64,000 bases of DNA from Camelus ferus (GCF_009834535.1 NC_045716.1:23064001-23128000); one strand, 5' to 3'. Positions 4,328 through 60,343 are shown, numbered from the stretch's first letter. Made by a program: numbers and translations. Notes: generated by a model from the sequence alone, not told the origin.

Positions 4328-7300
4328 ATGGCAGCTGAGCCACTGACCGAGCTGGAGGTGGCCATCGAGACAGTGGTTACCACCTTCTTCACCTTTGCAG
4401 GGCGGGAGGGCCGGAAGGGCAGCCTCAGCATCGATGAGTTCAAGGAGCTGGTCACTCAGCAGTTGCCTCACCTGCTCAAGGTGAGTGGAATCTCTGGGCC
4501 TGAGATCTTGGGAGCCAGTGGCTGTAGGACGCTGTGTATGTGAGGTGACATTGCTCAGCATGATAAGGCTCAGCACAAGGTGTCATGGGGGAGGGTGTGG
4601 GGACTGCATGTGTGTAAATGGTTCTGGATGTTCTTACCTGGTGTGTGTGTGTGCATAACTCCGTGACAGTGTGCCTGTGAGTGCAAGTGTGTTATTGGGC
4701 TTTGCTCTTCCATCAGGCGATGCTGTTGGATTCCTGTTGTGTCTGCTCTGTGCCTCTCTGGTCTCATTTACCCAACACAGGGCTGGACCCAGAGCTGGTT
4801 TCCAGAAGATTCATAGACCATCAGAGCTAGAACGAGGCCAAGAGAAAACACAGTCCTGATTCCTCACTTCATGTATATAGAAACGGGCTCAGCTATGGGA
4901 GAGGATTTATCAAAAATAATTCTATGAGTCTAATCCTTGGAGTCATAGGATCTCAGTGTAGGAGGGACCAGTAAGTGGTCTGTGATTACTCCTCACCCCT
5001 TCTGGGAGTGCCCTCAATAATGCAACTGACAGGATCCTTCCTTCTCTCCTACTCACAGGCTGGAGTAGGGATTCACATTTCATCTGCTCTGGGTTGGCAC
5101 ATCATCCCAGGCTGTTAACAGTTTCTCTTACATCCTTTCTGAAAATTCACAGGCACATAAAAGTGTGTGAATATAGATTTTTTAAAAAAACACAAACAGT
5201 TCTGAAATTCATAGTCTTATCATCTTCAGTATCTCCTACACCCTTAAGACTTTCCCCTTCTTCCTTTCACAGGAAACTTAAGGCTCTCCCCTAAAAATGC
5301 AACATTCCCTGTAGTCTTGTTAAATAGTGAGTGTTTTCTTCTCCCAAATCCAACTCCCTCTGGGCCTGGAGATGCAGGTAGTGACCTCTTTGCTCTTCTT
5401 GCTGCTTCCAGATCTTAGTTTCTTCCTGTTCCTAAGACGTCCAGCTCCTTGAAGCTCCTATGTACCCGCCTCCACCGTTCTTACTGCATTCCTTCCCGCC
5501 CTTCAGCTCTGGCTGACTGATTTCCTTCTCATCACTGCTGCTGCCGTTACCTTCAGTATCCACATGGACAGCTCATCCAGCATCCAGGCCTCTCAACTTC
5601 TTGAACTCCTCACTTTCAAAGATTCTATCTTCCTGCTGCATCCCCCCCCTCCCCCCCCGTTCATTCTTCAGCTCTTATTACCAATGTACCACCTCCGGAA
5701 TCTCAATTCCAGGACTCTCTTTCTCTGTCTACCACCTCCTGTTATCCCAGTTCTATTCCTCTGTTTCGTTCCTCCTCTCCACCATTTCCTGACACCACTG
5801 GGACCTTCAGTCTCTTGACCCTATCACTTTTTCGCCTTCCATCACCTTCCCTCATGACCTCATTTCCCTCCTTACTCAGCTGGGTTCTAAGGTTCATCAT
5901 TATAATCATACCCTTAACTCCCTTGATTCTCTTTCTCTCTGTCCTCTCTCTGGGTTGGGCAAAATCCCAACTTAGGTTAAATGCAACATTTCACCTCCAT
6001 TAACTTGCTGGTGAAACCCACCATTCTGCGTCTGCACCATACAGCTGAATCTGGCTGGAGACGAGCGCACTGCCATGTTGACTTGTCTCATGTTAAATCT
6101 ATAAGCCCAAAGCCCAACAGGACCCTTAGCAATGCCTGGCTGTTCAACTACGTTTCCCTAGTGGGTTCATTGACCATCTTTCGGATGGTTATTTCACAGC
6201 TTTCCCTTTCTCCTCGAACTCCAGTGCCTCTTTCCACATTTGCTTTCTTAATGAGAAAATTTCTCATGAATTAAATAAGAACAATCAGGAAACTTCTATG
6301 TGCTCCCTCCCCCTAATCAGCCAATCCATCAGCACATTCCCTGCCTTCTTTTCTGTTACTGTGAATGATCCGTCTCTGCTCCTAAGGCCAGCCCCTCCAC
6401 TGGTGCCTTAACTCCCATCCCTACTCATCCACTTAAAGATGCTACTGTTTCCATTTTTACCTTTCTTTCTTTTGTCACATTTACCCTCTCTACTCGGTTG
6501 TTCTGATCAGTTTACAAACACGCTTTTTCAAGCCAAATATCTCCCAGCTTAAAAGAAAACTTCGCTTGACTTTGTAACTCCCTCCGGCTATGCCTTATGT
6601 CTCTGCTCCCCTTTGTAGCAAAACTCCTCAAAAGCAGTGAGAGTTACTTATACTTACTGTCTCCACTTTTCCTCCCCTGGTTAGAATGCTCATTCCCCAG
6701 CTATCTCCTAGGCTTATTCTTTATTTGACTCAGATTTCTGCTTATATGGCAAATCCTCAGCATGAGCTTCCTTCACCCCTGAGTACAGAAGTCACCTCCT
6801 TGTGCTCTGTTCCTTTGCCCTGGGATATTTTCTTTCAGAACACTTCCATCACAGCTTAGCCTCCTTTACATAATTATATGTCACTAAGAAGTAACATATA
6901 ATTGCTTTCCTTTCCATGTAGGAAACAAGTCTTTTTCCATGAAGGAAAGGAACCTGCTCACTGTTTTACCTGCAGCACTTAGAGTAGTGTCTGACTCCTA
7001 GTAGGTGCTCAATAAAGTATGGAGGGTATCTGGGAGATAGTAAAAAAGTTGAAAAAAAATAAAATTGTTGAGTGAGTGAATAAATAAATGCATCTTACCT
7101 ACTGTTCTACAAATAGCTTTTTAAAAATGTAACAATGCATATAGGCTATTTTCCCATTATAAAAAAAATGATGCACTGTATTCTAATATGTAACTCACCA
7201 CAAATTTATGTAGCTAATCCTCTATTGAGGAATATTTCTCTTCTGTCCACTTTTCCACTTTTGCAAACATTGTTATTTATGTATCTTTAAATACTTGGAG

Positions 7301-13121: not shown

Positions 13122-14100
13122 ATGGGACAGTGTCGGTCAGCCAATGCGGAGGTGGGTCCATTCATTCCTGGCCTTTCTGTTCCCACCCTCCTCTCCTTCA
13201 CCCTGAGGGTCTGTGTCCCCCCTTGACTTCTGCCCCCTAACCCAGGCCTTGCCCTGCACTCCTGACCCTGCCGGTGAGACCCGAAGCCCCTCTCTGGTGC
13301 CCACACAGGCTGATGTAGATGGGCCCTCCCTGGAGGAGGATGCCTGGGCCACGTGCTGGGACCTGCCCTGCCTGGGTGCTGGCGGGTGGCGGGGAGGAAG
13401 TCTTGCCCAACCTGTGGCTCAGGGCAGAGGACAGCAGGGGCAAGGGGGCTGGATGCTGGGTTCTGGAGTGGGCGGGGGCCCACGTGCCTGCCAGCTGTCT
13501 TCGGCCCTGTTGGCTCTGCCTGTCTCCTGAGGAAACAGGGTGTCATAGGGTGGGTGGAGCCTCCCTGACATGGGCGATGTCCCTTGCCCTCAGGATGCCC
13601 AGNNNNNNNNNNNNNNNNNNNNNNNNNNNNNNNNNNNNNNNNNNNNNNNNNNNNNNNNNNNNNNNNNNNNNNNNNNNNNNNNNNNNNNNNNNNNNNNNNN
13701 NNNNNNNNNNNNNNNNNNNNNNNNNNNNNNNNNNNNNNNNNNACTGAGGGAGTGGGCCCTACCCCAGGCAGTACCCTGACTTCCCAAGCAAGTGCTCCAA
13801 GACCCCGCCCACGCTGCCTGGGCCCCTGGCACTGGCAACCCCCAGCCCTACCCCTTGTCAGTGCCAGGTAGGCTCAGGTCCTGCTCCCTGCTCCTGGGCA
13901 GTCTTGGGTGGGAAGGGTGGAAGGTCCTCCTGCCTGAGCTGTGGTGTCTTCCCTTCTCTCAGAGCAACTGTGGGCTGGAAGAGAAAATCGCCAACTTGGG
14001 CAGCTGTAATGACTCTAAACTGGAGTTCGGGAGTTTCTGGGAGCTGATTGGAGAAGCAGCCAAAAGTGTGAAGCTGGAGAACCCTGTCCGGGGGAGTTGA
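13122..14100 (+). CDS. S100A14: Protein S100-A14, ~104 aa; join(13122..13151,13594..~13740,13963..14100); middle exon mostly N
   Basis: [10 protein letters not shown]|gtgggt; cag|DAQ then N 13603-13743; ag|[45 protein letters not shown]. The N-terminal MGQCRS myristoylation-type motif is typical of S100A14. The end of the middle exon is inferred. Confidence 0.93.
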
Positions 14101-22749: not shown

Positions 22750-25700
22750 TTATATATATATTTGTGATAAAAACACACACAACATCAATTTACCTTCTTA
22801 ACAAATTTTAAATGCACATTACAGTACTGTTAACTACATGCACATGGTTGTACAGCAGATCTCCAGAAATTTTTCATCTTACAGGACTGAACCTCTGTAC
22901 TCGTTCAATAACAACTCCCCATNNNNNNNNNNNNNNNNNNNNNNNNNNNNNNNNNNNNNNNNNNNNNNNNNNNNNNNNNNNNNNNNNNNNNNNNNNNNNN
23001 NNNNNNNNNNNNNNNNNNNNNNNNNNNNNNNNNNNNNNNNNNNNNNNNNNNNNNNNNNNNNNNNNNNNNNNNNNNNNNNNNNNNNNNNNNNNNNNNNNNN
23101 NNNNNNNNNNNNNNNNNNNNNNNNNNNNNNNNNNNNNNNNNNNNNNNNNNNNNNNNNNNNNNNNNNNNNNNNNNNNNNNNNNNTGCTTCTAGATCTTGCC
23201 TATTGTGAATAATGCTGCAATGAACATGGAGTGCTAGTTTCTTTTCAAGATCCTGTTTTCAGATATTTTCAATGTAAATCCAAACATGGGATTGCTGGGT
23301 ATATAGTAGTTCTACTGCTAAAAATCTGAGGACACACCATACTATTTTCCATAGTGGATGCACTATTTTACATTCCCACCAACAGTGCACAAATGTTCCA
23401 ATTTCTCCACATGCTTACCAATACTTGTTATTTTCTGTTTTCTTGTTTGTTTGTTTTATAGTGGTCATCCTAATGAGTGTGAGATTATACCTTATTTGTT
23501 TTAAATTTGCATTTCCCTGATGATTAGTGACGTTGAGCATCTTTTCACATGTTTCTTGACCATTTGTGTATCTACTTTGGAGAAATGTTTATTCAGCTCC
23601 TTTGCCCATTTATAAATGTTTTTGTTGTTGTTGTTCTTTCATTTTGGTTTTTTTTTGTAATTGAGTTGTAGTTCTTTATGTCCTGGATATTAACCCCTTA
23701 TCTGATATATGGTTTACAAATATTTTCTCCCATCCTGTACATTACCTTTTCACTCTGTTGATTTTTTCCCACAGAAGTTTTTAAGCTTAATGTAATCCCA
23801 TTTGCCTATTTTTGCTTTTGTTACCTGTGTTTGGTGACATAGCCACGAAATCGTCACTCATTACAAGGTCATGAGGATTTTCCTNNNNNNNNNNNNNNNN
23901 NNNNNNNNNNNNNNNNNNNNNNNNNNNNNNNNNNNNNNNNNNNNNNNNNNNNNNNNNNNNNNNNNNNNNNNNNNNNNNNNNNNNNNNNNNNNNNNNNNNN
24001 NNNNNNNNNNNNNNNNNNNNNNNNNNNNNNNNNNNNNNNNNNNNNNNNNNNNNNNNNNNNNNNNGCATCCTTGTTGAAAAATCACTCGACCATGTATGTG
24101 AAGGTGTATTTCTGCATTCTCCGTTCTGTTCCATTGGTCTGTATGTCTGTCTTTTTGCCAGTTCCAGACTGTTTTGATTACTGTAGCTTTGTAAAATGTT
24201 TTGAAATCAGGAAGTGTAAGGGCTTCAGCTTTGCTCTTTCTCAAGATTTTTTGGGCTATTTGAGGTCATTTGAGGTTCCATATGAATTTTAGGATAGTTT
24301 TTTTCTTCTTCCAAAAAATTCCATTGGAATCTTGATAGGGATTGCATTTAATCTATAGATGACTTTGGATAGTGTGGACATTTTAATAATATTAAGTCTT
24401 CCAATCCATGAACATAGGATGTCTTTCCCTTTATTTGTGCTTTCTTTAGTTTCTTTCAACAATGTTTTGTAGTTCTCAATGTACAAGTCTTTTTCCTCCT
24501 TGGTTAAGTTAATTACNNNNNNNNNNNNNNNNNNNNNNNNNNNNNNNNNNNNNNNNNNNNNNNNNNNNNNNNNNNNNNNNNNNNNNNNNNNNNNNNNNNN
24601 NNNNNNNNNNNNNNNNNNNNNNNNNNNNNNNNNNNNNNNNNNNNNNNNNNNNNNNTTAGTTCTAACAATTTCTTTGTGGAATCTCTAGGTTTTGCACATA
24701 TAAGATTATGTCATCTGGGAACAGAGATAATTTTAGTTCTTCTTTCCCCATGTGGATGCCTTTTATTTATTTTCATTGCCTAATTGCTTTGGCTAGGACT
24801 CCAGTATTACACTGAACAGAAGTGGTAAAAGTGGGCATCTTTGCCTTGTCCCTGATCTTAGAGGAGAAGTCTTCTGTTTTTCACTGTTGAGTATGAAGTT
24901 TACTGTGAGCTTTTCATTATGATTGACTTACATTATGGTGAGGTNNNNNNNNNNNNNNNNNNNNNNNNNNNNNNNNNNNNNNNNNNNNNNNNNNNNNNNN
25001 NNNNNNNNNNNNNNNNNNNNNNNNNNNNNNNNNNNNNNNNNNNNNNNNNNNNNNNNNNNNNNNNNNNNNNNNNNNNNNNNNNNNNNNNNNNNNNNNNNNN
25101 NNNNNNNNNNNNNNNNNNNNNNNNNNNNNNNNNNNNNNNNNNNNNNNNNNNNNNNNNNNNNNNNNNNNNNNNNNNNNNNNNNNNNNNNNNNNNNNNNNNN
25201 NNNNNNNNNNNNNNNNNNNNNNNNNNNNNNNNNNNNNNNNNNNNNNNNNNNNNNNNNNNNNNNNNNNNNNNNNNNNNNNNNNNNNNNNNNNNNNNNNNNN
25301 NNNNNNNNNNNNNNNNNNNTTCTCTTTAACTTTTGGGAAGAGTTTGAGAAGGATTGGTGTTAATTTTCTTTAATTGTTTGATAGAAAAGTGCATTGAAAC
25401 TATCTGGTTTTGGGCTTTTCTTTGTTTGGGTTTTTTCTTGATTACTGATTCAGTCTCCTTACTAATTATAAGTCTGTTCAGAAATTCTAATTCTTCATGA
25501 TTCAGTGTTGGTAGGTTCTGTGTTTCTAAGAAGTTACCCATTTTGTCTAGGTTATCCAAATTTTTGGCTTATAATTGTTCACACTAGTGTCTTATTATCC
25601 TTTGTATTTCCCTGGCATCAGTTGTAATGTCTCCTCTTTCATTTCCGACTTCAGCGATTTGAATCTTCTTTTTTTTTTCTTAGTTAATCTAGCTAAAGAC

Positions 25701-43355: not shown

Positions 43356-44585
43356 AACTCTGTCCTGCTGAGGGCTGGGTGGGGAGGACCCCCGTCGGTC
43401 TCTGCCTTTGTGCCTTTGTCTCGATCTTTGTCTCATTCTGATAGCATTGCTGGAAGAGTCCTGGGGCCTCTGTGAGTCTCTGCACTTGAAGGGAACCTCC
43501 TGTGAAGTGTCAGACTGAGACTTTCCAGGCTCCTCGGTGAGGTTTCAGTTTAGGGATTACTCTGAGGCCCCCTCTTGGGGCTCCCAGTCTGGGTGTCAGT
43601 CTAGAAGCCCTTCTTGGAGGTCTNNNNNNNNNNNNNNNNNNNNNNNNNNNNNNNNNNNNNNNNNNNNNNNNNNNNNNNNNNNNNNNNNNNNNNNNNNNNN
43701 NNNNNNNNNNNNNNNNNNNNNNNNNNNNNNNNNNNNNNNNNNNNNNNNNNNNNNNNNNNNNNNNNNNNNNNNNNNNNNGCAGGACTCAGGAACAAGAGCC
43801 AAGGCTCTCAAGTGCGTGGGCCCTCCTGGGTCCCTGCCCTGAGTAGCGGCCTAGCTCTGCCCACTGCCGCTTCCTGTCCTCTCCCACCTCCTGAAGGCAG
43901 GGCTGGCAGGATGGGCCCCTGGGTTCTCCCTGCCTCTGACACCAGCTCCTCTGGCCTCCCCCTGGACCCGCCTAACCCTCCTGGGCTGGTCTGAGCATTC
44001 TCGAAGCAGGACCTTGGAAAAGATGACCTCCGAGGTCTGTCCTTATGTCCCAGATTCTTTCCTGATCCCGGGGCCCTGGGCTTTTAATTTCTTTCATTCC
44101 AGCCCCAGTAAGATCCTTCCTGGGGAGAAGGGTGTTCAGTTGCCTCCACCCTACCCATGCCCCATCTGCATAGAGCCAGCACCGCCGCTTAGGGGCCTCC
44201 AGTATGAGGGGAGACACATTCCCTGCCCTATGAGAGCCCCGAGTCCCAGGGAGGACATGTGCCTGCCCCGGGGAGCTTCCAGTTAGATGAGAGAGCGACA
44301 CCCTCTGGCTGAGGAGGGAAATGACCCCTCAGGGACCCTCCTACCCCTGAGGGGAGCCAGCAGCCCCAGTGAGTAGCCCATGGAGGTGCCTGCCTCCCCA
44401 GCGCTGGCACAGAGCCCACTGGCCTGTGGAAGGAGCTGCAGAGAGATGATCCCAGATGGGACTCAGATCGCCCTGCCATTTCCCTTCCACAGACACTCAA
44501 AGGGGGAGCCCTGCCTCGGGGGTGGGCCCCAAGTGGGATCAGAGGAGCCCTGAGGCCCTTCCGAACACAGCCAGCGGAAGGGTGA

Positions 44586-45853
<1,268 letters not shown>

Positions 45854-45924
45854 TGCAGCACGCTCGCCTCCCTCCCGCGGGCCTCGGGGGCCCAGGAGGA
45901 CTCTCTGTAGTTAGTTTTATACTC

Positions 45925-54470: not shown

Positions 54471-55408
54471 GCCAGCCACAACCAGGCTGGCCATTTGCTC
54501 CACAGGGCCCAGCAGAGGGGGAAACATCAGGGAGAGAGCCCTGGCCCAGGCTGCCTCGTGTTGCAGGACTCCTGTCCCCTGGGGGAACCAGGCGTGAGTC
54601 ATAGGGCTCACATGGAAACAACACATGCCTTCCTGGCTGCCTTATGGTTTCCCCAGGCTGGAGGCAACTCCCTGAAGGGTGGTGGGTGGGGCCAGTGGAA
54701 TGGCGGGGGTGGGCCATTCCAGGAAGGATTTCCCCTTTAACAGAGCAGGGTACCCTTCTGCAGAGCCTTCTGTCTCAAGACCCCTGGGGTCAGGGGGATG
54801 GCCTCAGGTGGGGCAGATCACACATTGGTAGGTGCATACCTGTGTTGGTGAGGTGGTGGGGGTTCTTCTGAGATCTGACCCTCCCTGAGAATGCCCAGCC
54901 TTGCCAAGGGACCGAGGACGGGGTACATGGGGCCAGGGTCTCCTAGTACAGGTTCCTAGAGAAGGAACTCTGGGGTCGGAAGGGGAGGAGGCTTCTAGGG
55001 CCAGGGCCTGTGTCTGATGGGGTGGTGCAGAGTGGGACTGAGCCCTCGCTGGGTGTTGGGGTGAGAAAAGGTGGAGAGAATCAGGGAGTCCTCAGGAAGC
55101 CCCTGGGTGGGGTGTGCCAGCTAGGGGGTGGGCCACTCTCCCTGAGGGGTTTGCAATGATGTTGGGGAGAAAAAAGTCCTCGGTCCAGGGGAAGAACAAG
55201 TGTGGAGGGGACAGTCGGGAAATAGATGAGGAGGGGCCAGTGTAGTCAGGGAGGGCTACTCAGAGGAGGGGGAGTTTGTGGGGCTGGAAGCCTGGAGGAG
55301 ATTAAGTCAGATCTGGGCACAGTCCCTGGGACACACGGAAGGCAGGGAGGAGCAGGGGGCTGACATGGCCTCTGCCCTGAGTCGTACCCCTGTTCTGTGA
55401 CAGTGAGG

Positions 55409-56181
55409 ATGACCAGTCCTCTGGAGCAGGCGTTGGCTACAATTATATCCAGCTTCCAGAGACATGCTGAGCGCTTCGGGGACAATTATACACTCTGCCA
55501 GGCGGAGCTCAAGGAGCTGGTACAGACGGAGCTGCCCACCTGGACCCCGGTGAGCTCCTGGGGTGACCATCCCACGGGAAGCACTGCTAAGACTCTGCAA
55601 AGAGAGACCTGGAGATGAGTTGAGAATCAGACAGCCAGGGGGTGGAGGCCGGATTGTGGGGAGGGGGTGCTAGGAAGCGGGTTAACACAGCAGGAATCTC
55701 AATTTCCCCACCTGTGAAATGGGAGGACAATCATCACACGGGTGGCCTGGCAGGGCTGTTCGGAGGACCTAGCGACAGCACTGGGAAGAATGCCTGACAC
55801 ACAGTAGGCACTCAGTAGCACAGAGCAGGTGCTCAGTAAATGGCCTGAGAAGGAGGACTTGGGAGGGGGACGGACACAGGTGAGTTACCAGAATAGAAGG
55901 GGTGTGGATTGAGCGGGACCACCCAGGATGGTGGAAGGGAAGCTGAATGTGTGTACGAGACTGTTCTGTCCTCCTCAACCTGCCTCCCCATCCCTCCTCA
56001 ACCCTGCCCTGCACAGACGGGCCTTCGGGAGTGTGACTACAATAAATTGATGAGTGTCCTGGACACCAACAAAGATCAGCAGGTGGACTTCGCGGAGTAC
56101 ATGAACAAGCTTGCCTGCCTCTGCATCTACTGCCACGAATACTTCAAGAACTGCCCCCCAGAAGCCCCCTGCTCTCAGTAA
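55409..56181 (+). CDS. S100A3: Protein S100-A3, 101 aa; join(55409..55549,56017..56181)
   Basis: [47 protein letters not shown] | TGLRECDYNKLMSVLDTNKDQQVDFAEYMNKLACLCIYCHEYFKNCPPEAPCSQ*; Cys-rich C-terminus and R51 are diagnostic; acceptor cag|tgagg at 55403, donor at 55550, acceptor at 56016. Confidence 0.96.
55700..55850 (+). mobile_element. MIR in S100A3 intron 2
   Basis: tcaatttccccacctgtgaaatgggaggacaat...gcctgacacacagtaggcactcagta. Confidence 0.65.

Positions 56182-58869: not shown

Positions 58870-60343
<1,474 letters not shown>

Follow-up and report, generated by a model that had tools for sequence, protein, structure and literature searches.

Camel S100A3 lacks one of the two cysteines that form the Cys30-Cys68 bridge of the human protein. 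Is this a camelid peculiarity, a sign of decay, or a change that an otherwise working orthologue can accommodate? The question arises from a first-pass annotation of a 64,000-nucleotide stretch of Camelus ferus DNA (the window), which described a strongly diverged S100A3 without Cys68, proposed that this cuticle protein had undergone accelerated evolution in a probable fibre-bearing camelid, and suggested a branch-site dN/dS analysis as a check. Here, we examine the identity of the gene, the distribution of the bridge among mammals, and the rate and mode of change on the camelid stem.

Gene structure and identity

The window contains an intact camelid S100A3 orthologue located between S100A2 and S100A4 (Table 1). 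S100A3 is a Cys-rich S100 protein of the hair cuticle that binds Ca2+ and Zn2+. Its reading frame is open, starts with Met, and joins 47 and 54 residues into a product of 101 aa (P0001) that is 100% identical to the RefSeq S100-A3 of Camelus dromedarius, C. ferus, and C. bactrianus. The Pfam family PF01023 (S_100) is recorded for this protein, and it aligns with S100 structures from end to end. In HMMER searches against the PDB, the top match of each camel exon is human S100A3 (E = 2e-25 and 2.5e-15), whereas the S100A4 matches are far weaker (E = 6e-10 and ~1e-6), and the S100A2 and S100A6 structures also fall behind human S100A3 for each exon. For exon 3, the S100A3 chains score 90-92 bits versus 42 bits for S100A4. 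The flanking genes identified by tblastn of P0001 are S100A2 (44751-45859) and S100A4 (58894-60331), and the order of S100A2, S100A3, S100A4, and an S100A13-like exon is that expected for the S100A cluster. A pseudogene copy is ruled out by the intact reading frame, the GT..AG intron, and the syntenic position. The gene is an ordinary one that is already annotated in RefSeq, and its discovery is not new. The window also includes runs of N, either assembly gaps or masked sequence, at 88-227, 13603-13742, 22923-23183, 23885-24064, 24517-24655, 24945-25319, and 43624-43778, none of which lies over S100A3.

Table 1. Positions of S100A3 features and neighbouring S100 exons, counted from the first nucleotide of the window
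Feature	Position	Strand	Evidence or remark
S100A13-like exon	4346-4468	+	tblastn of P0001
S100A2 coding exons	44751-44885, 45728-45859	+	tblastn of P0001
AG upstream of S100A3 first coding exon	55402-55403	+	sequence read
S100A3 first coding exon, aa 1-47 (helix I, pseudo-EF-hand loop, helix II)	55409..55549	+	translation; HMMER alignment to 1KSO residues 1-47, E = 2.5e-15
Codon 14, TCC (Ser)	55448-55450	+	
Codon 23, TTC (Phe)	55475-55477	+	
Codon 30, TGC (Cys, retained)	55496-55498	+	
S100A3 intron, 467 nt, phase 0, GT..AG	55550..56016	+	exon mapping against P0001
S100A3 second coding exon, aa 48-101 and TAA stop (Arg51, helix III, canonical EF loop, helix IV, Cys-rich C-terminus)	56017..56181	+	translation; human residues 49-101, E = 2e-25
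Codon 51, CGG (Arg)	56026-56028	+	
Canonical EF-hand loop, codons 63-74 (DTNKDQQVDFAE), 12 residues	56062..56097	+	
Codon 68, CAG (Gln), EF-loop position 6	56077..56079	+	most mammals TGC/TGT
Codons 77-78, AAC AAG (Asn-Lys)	56104..56109	+	CGC TCC (Arg-Ser) in other Laurasiatheria
Codons 83-93 with proposed (Cys)3His Zn2+ site	56122..56154	+	all four residues present
Putative AATAAA polyadenylation signal, ~345 nt past the stop codon	56524..56529	+	sequence read
S100A4 coding exons	58894-59028, 60161-60331	+	tblastn of P0001

Retained and replaced residues

Relative to human S100A3 (HMMER alignment to 1KSO), the camel protein is identical at 72/101 residues and differs at 29/101, with 16 of the differences encoded by the first coding exon (residues 1-47) and 13 by the second (48-101). 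The first-pass count of about 29/101 was exact, and its companion figure of about 2/101 for S100A4 agrees with the ~2 differences, one per coding exon, that we observe in the aligned parts of the camel and human proteins. The residue inventory given there likewise agrees with the translation at every item, including the seven cysteines (30, 53, 81, 83, 86, 93, and 99), Ser14, Phe23, Gln68, the sequence RHAERFGDNYT at residues 18-28, and the retained sites. All EF-loop ligands are present (D63, N65, D67, D71, and E74, at loop positions 1, 3, 5, 9, and 12), as are Glu33 of the pseudo-EF hand and both partners of the putative second bridge, Cys81 and Cys99. The proposed zinc ligands Cys83, Cys86, His87, and Cys93 (4/4 present) presumably form the Zn2+ site, an assignment reportedly made by Unno et al. 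2011. Arg51, which is found in camel and in 53/54 mammals overall, is the site at which citrullination by PAD3 triggers tetramerisation (PMC7014782).

Gln68 and the recurrent loss of the bridge

The replacement at position 68 is genuine and old. The alpaca locus (L001), which comes from an independent assembly, also has CAG at codon 68, which shows that Gln68 is no sequencing error and arose before crown camelids. A faulty codon had been named in the first-pass annotation as a way in which its claim could fail. With CAG in alpaca and an identical protein in three Camelus species, a sequencing or assembly error has virtually no chance of being the explanation, and we found no support for sequencing error, assembly error, or a pseudogene. 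Because position 68 is Gln, the Cys30-Cys68 bridge cannot form in camelid S100A3.

To place this loss among mammals, we aligned S100A3 sequences of canonical length from 54 species, taken from clusters at 90% identity; a homologue search with the full P0001 gave 39 hits. Position 68 is Cys in 43 of these species, Gly in six (pig, goat, sheep (Ovis canadensis), oryx, Rhinolophus, and Hipposideros), Gln in three (camel, alpaca, and Mustela), Arg in one (Lutra), and Asn in one (naked mole-rat). Position 30 is Cys in 52 and Ser in two that have kept Cys68, a sloth and a wallaby. Counted on the accepted mammalian tree, Cys68 has been lost independently at least six times: in camelids, pig, caprine/hippotragine bovids, mustelids, rhinolophoid bats, and the naked mole-rat. 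With the two losses of Cys30, one bridge partner has disappeared at least eight times in the 54 species, and the bridge is thus dispensable and lineage-variable in S100A3. No lineage without Cys68 has lost Cys30, Arg51, or His87.

The Cys30-Cys68 pair is absent from camel and from 12 other sequences of the 54 (alpaca and nine others without Cys68, and two without Cys30), and the bridge is therefore not a defining feature of the orthologue group. Judged by its sequence, camel S100A3 appears to possess the testable defining features of this group, save the bridge itself. The earlier claim of bridge loss holds with respect to Gln68, the impossibility of the bridge, and the retention of Cys30, but it does not hold as a camelid peculiarity. 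The first-pass annotation had itself said that widespread loss of Cys68 in mammals would count against its reading, and with at least six losses among 54 mammals, the loss is largely of that kind.

Other cysteines also vary within this alignment. Cys14 and Cys23 tend to go together: both are absent from all strongly diverged lineages, namely camelids, felids, ruminants other than Bubalus, hystricognath rodents, armadillo, sloth, wallaby, moles, and hedgehog, while the few discordant species (Bubalus, Hyaena, Mustela, and Lutra) have Cys14 without Cys23. This distribution suggests that the two residues may be functionally coupled and that Cys23 may have been lost first. At the proposed zinc ligand 93, ruminant sequences (P0042, P0031, P0028, and others), which also have positions 26-27 deleted, carry Ser and felids (P0076-P0079) carry Val, with Gly or Ser in hyaena and meerkat. 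By residue content, the metal site of ruminants, felids, hyaena, and meerkat would resemble the human type less closely than that of camel does.

Accelerated replacement on the camelid stem

For analysis of substitution rates, we assembled a codon set of the window and 11 further loci (alpaca, pig, cattle, caprine, rhinoceros, canid, Phyllostomus, pangolin, mole, rabbit, and cheetah), giving an alignment of 102 columns and 12 taxa with rabbit as the sole outgroup. By the method of Nei and Gojobori, dN/dS is 0.09-0.20 among conservative lineages and 0.3-0.6 between camel and these lineages. A GY94-F3x4 likelihood model, implemented in our own code on the accepted species tree with six branch classes, gives omega values of 0.09 for the background, 0.62 for the camelid stem, 0.16 for crown camelids, 0.42 for the ruminant stem, 0.54 for cheetah, and 0.50 for crown bovids. 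The camelid stem carries ~13 synonymous and ~36 non-synonymous substitutions, and its omega differs from the background (2ΔlnL = 16.4, p = 5e-5) but not from 1 (2ΔlnL = 0.95, p = 0.33). Intron distances are 0.29 for camel-rhinoceros, 0.32 for camel-pig, and 0.35 for pig-rhinoceros, and since they show no camel excess, the acceleration is not an effect of mutation rate. The accelerated evolution proposed at the outset is therefore borne out.

The camelids are not exceptional in this respect. They differ from the 54-species consensus at 27-28 residues, fewer than ruminants (30-36), about as many as a sloth (28) and a wallaby (27), and slightly more than cats (25-26). The description of the camel gene as strongly diverged is correct in that 29/101 residues differ from human and the stem is accelerated, but ruminants and cat show similar acceleration. 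By itself, the rate shift cannot separate relaxed constraint from positive selection.

Origin of the derived codons

At codon 68, 3/3 nucleotides changed from the ancestral TGC to CAG. Position 6 of the EF loop is Gln in camel S100A2 and Asn in camel S100A4, and Gly, Gln, Asn, and Arg are residues common at this position of EF loops. The C68Q replacement therefore makes the camelid loop resemble that of an ordinary S100 protein. The likeness to S100A2 raises the alternative that a micro gene conversion brought in Gln68 in one step, which would explain the triple change. Over codons 68-72 (56077-56091), where S100A2 reads CAG GAG GTG GAC TTC within its exon at 45728-45859, 4/5 derived camel S100A3 nucleotides agree with S100A2, namely all of codon 68 and the change of TTT to TTC at codon 72. 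However, the possible tract spans only ~15-17 nt, agreement with S100A2 breaks down at codon 69 (GAG to CAG) and in either flank, and TTC at codon 72 is also found in pig and rabbit. The derived nucleotides match S100A2 at 6/24 positions in exon 2 and 6/17 in exon 3, which is not above the expectation for a paralogue, and Gln in Mustela and Arg in Lutra suggest that a stepwise route to Gln68 exists. We consequently regard such a conversion as improbable. As a donor, S100A4 fares no better, since derived camelid nucleotides match it less often than S100A2, and large-scale conversion from either gene is rejected, as the comparison of derived nucleotides contains no large tract.

A second cluster of changes lies at codons 77-78 (56104-56109), where 5/6 adjacent nucleotides changed on the camelid stem and differ from every other laurasiatherian sampled. 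The pattern resembles a complex or multi-nucleotide mutation, for which no template turned up among the paralogues.

In human S100A3, the C30A+C68A double mutation reportedly abolished Ca2+ binding and slowed citrullination (Unno et al. 2011, J Mol Biol 408:477). Mutant structures of human S100A3 exist as 3NSK and 3NSL, and Ala68 in 3NSL is consistent with this mutant. If the result transfers, camelid S100A3 could be functionally impaired rather than normal. Camel S100A2 also has Gln at loop position 6, however, and the human result therefore need not transfer.

Relaxed constraint or positive selection

Within camelids, the derived sequence seems to have come under purifying selection again, although counts are small. 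Camel and alpaca differ by two non-synonymous and three synonymous changes (dN/dS 0.17), with 11 mismatches in 467 nt of intron (2.4%) and 3.1-4.0% divergence in the 1.5-kb flanks. On these intron and flank yardsticks, 5.8-9.7 non-synonymous changes would be expected under neutrality versus the two observed, and the Poisson probability of the deficit is 0.07 with the intron and 0.02 and 0.004 with the flanks (7.6-9.7 expected). A binomial test of camel-alpaca constraint, with only five coding differences, gives p = 0.06. This renewed constraint, the intact frame, and the kept functional residues together argue against a decaying gene. Relaxed constraint with partial loss, in which the gene would have drifted in near-neutral fashion as in ruminants and cats, losing the disulfide and two other cysteines to leave a degraded form of the 10-Cys protein, is nonetheless a possibility that we take seriously, although we think it the less probable course. 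A stem omega of 0.62 that is not different from 1 (p = 0.33) is compatible with near-neutral decay, acceleration occurred in parallel in ruminants (0.42), cat (0.54), and crown bovids (0.5), and every highly diverged lineage among the 54 mammals is Cys-poor, with 6-8 Cys. The loss of Ca2+ binding said to follow from breakage of the human bridge (Unno et al. 2011, as cited above) would also fit. Yet the gene still has its reading frame and splice sites, along with Arg51, Cys81/Cys99, the zinc ligands, and every EF-loop ligand, only two residues differ between camel and alpaca despite 3-4% flanking divergence, and camelids, unlike ruminants and cats, have kept Cys93.

Positive selection on the camelid stem is suggested but fragile. 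We fitted branch-site model A with our own code, and since branch lengths could vary only by a scale factor, the likelihood-ratio tests are approximate. When the camelid stem is taken as foreground, 2ΔlnL is 11.2 (p = 8e-4) for 12 taxa and 7.9 (p = 0.005) without the ruminants and cat, with omega2 = 4.6-7.4 on 16-27% of sites, while tests on other foregrounds are not significant (pig or rhinoceros, 2ΔlnL = 0, p = 1; ruminant stem, 0.22, p = 0.64; cheetah, 2.9, p = 0.09). The sites with the highest posteriors (NEB) are codons with several changes, namely 68 and 77-78 but also 13 and 18. Multi-nucleotide codon changes are reported to produce false positives in the branch-site test (Venkat, Hahn and Thornton 2018). 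When all 11 multi-change codons are removed, 2ΔlnL falls to 0.27 (p = 0.61) while the stem omega stays at 0.61. With double and triple substitution rates added tree-wide, which improves the two-ratio model (2ΔlnL = 21.3), the stem test remains nominally significant (2ΔlnL = 6.7, p = 0.01). The branch-site check suggested by the first-pass annotation thus comes out in favour of selection with every codon included (stem p ~0.001) but not after removal of codons 68, 77, and 78 (2ΔlnL = 1.96, p = 0.16), and the signal is fragile because it rests on these three codons, which could equally well reflect complex mutational events. That selection on the stem moved sites 13, 18, 68, 77, and 78 to give a bridge-free, S100A2-like EF hand with a free Cys30 and Ca2+/redox behaviour suited to camelid hair is, in our judgement, doubtful. 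The subsequent conservation of the derived sequence between camel and alpaca would agree with such retuning, but omega over the branch as a whole is below 1, the gene is short at 101 codons, and the same cysteine was lost in lineages with very different hair. We think it unlikely that selection on the stem reshaped S100A3 into a protein free of the bridge, with an EF hand like that of S100A2 and with Cys30 put to another use, for example in intermolecular cross-linking or metal binding in the cuticle. Were this so, the repeated independent loss of Cys68 in mammals, always alongside a retained Cys30, would represent convergent functional tuning and not drift.

Hair and the literature

The proposed connection with fibre-bearing animals did not survive the comparison across mammals. 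The lineages without Cys68 include pig, mustelids, horseshoe bats, and the naked mole-rat, and because this spread covers very different coats, no association with fibre traits is visible and such an association is rejected for the 54 mammals. S100A3 has been detected in the fibre proteomes of sheep and goat, with abundance differing between fibre types (PMC9539809). As goat and Ovis canadensis have Gly68, a form without Cys68 is probably deposited in sheep and goat hair.

In the literature searched, we found no work on camelid S100A3 and no camelid expression or protein data; no paper paired S100A3 with alpaca, and for camel, papers were judged mostly by title. A dedicated evolutionary study of S100A3 (Minato, Unno and Kitano 2019, Gene 713:143975) is cited in PMC7014782, which reports from it that S100A3 and PAD3 co-evolved and were jointly lost in cetaceans. 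Cetacean S100A3 is absent among our homologue hits, consistent with the joint loss as described there (PMC7014782). Given the study of Minato, Unno and Kitano (2019), part of the recurrent-loss pattern may already be published.

A protein that probably works without the bridge

The explanation that we consider probable is that of an intact orthologue that underwent a burst of replacement on the stem followed by renewed constraint, with a dispensable bridge and a protein that still works. In the common ancestor of camel and alpaca, a fast episode of replacement at an omega of ~0.6 altered ~27/101 residues, including 3/10 'human-type' cysteines (C14S, C23F, and C68Q). Thereafter, the new sequence stayed near constant, leaving two amino acid differences between camel and alpaca. 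Gln68 is a normal residue for S100 paralogues, including camel S100A2, and its effect on the EF hand would likely be benign. The Ca2+ ligands, Arg51, the zinc-site residues, and Cys81/Cys99 have persisted without the Cys30-Cys68 bridge. Most likely, camelid S100A3 is still an Arg51-citrullinated, Ca2+/Zn2+-binding cuticle protein, presumably expressed in the camel hair cuticle.

The comparative pattern is of some value to S100 and hair biochemists. Either the behaviour of the human mutant is not general, or selection in S100A3 maintains something other than Ca2+ binding by this EF hand, and the natural variants at position 68 (Gln, Gly, Asn, and Arg) are material for testing the role of the bridge.

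Comparison with known S100 proteins

Human S100A3 (PDB 1KSO, 3NSI, and 3NSO) is also 101 aa long and has the same structure of two coding exons. It shares with camel Arg51, Cys30, Cys53, Cys81/Cys99, Cys83/Cys86/His87/Cys93, and the EF-loop ligands, whereas C14S, C23F, and C68Q are among the 29 substitutions that separate the two, and the pseudo-EF loop (residues 18-28) differs at 7/11 positions. Alpaca S100A3 (P0040) is 99/101 identical to camel, differing by Q7E and A97T, and has the same codon 68, Cys pattern, and intron length of 467 nt. The paralogues S100A2 and S100A4 have the S100 fold and the EF-loop framework in common with camel S100A3 (~42-45% identity) but are without its Cys-rich C-terminal CxCxxCH...C...C motif.

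Among the orthologues that lack Cys68, the losses are independent events with varied replacement residues (Gly, Gln, Arg, and Asn). Pig and horseshoe bats have Gly68 but are otherwise conservative, with nine differences from the consensus versus 27-28 in camelids. In ruminants, Cys93 has also been lost and the pseudo-EF loop has a deletion of two residues, whereas camelids keep Cys93.
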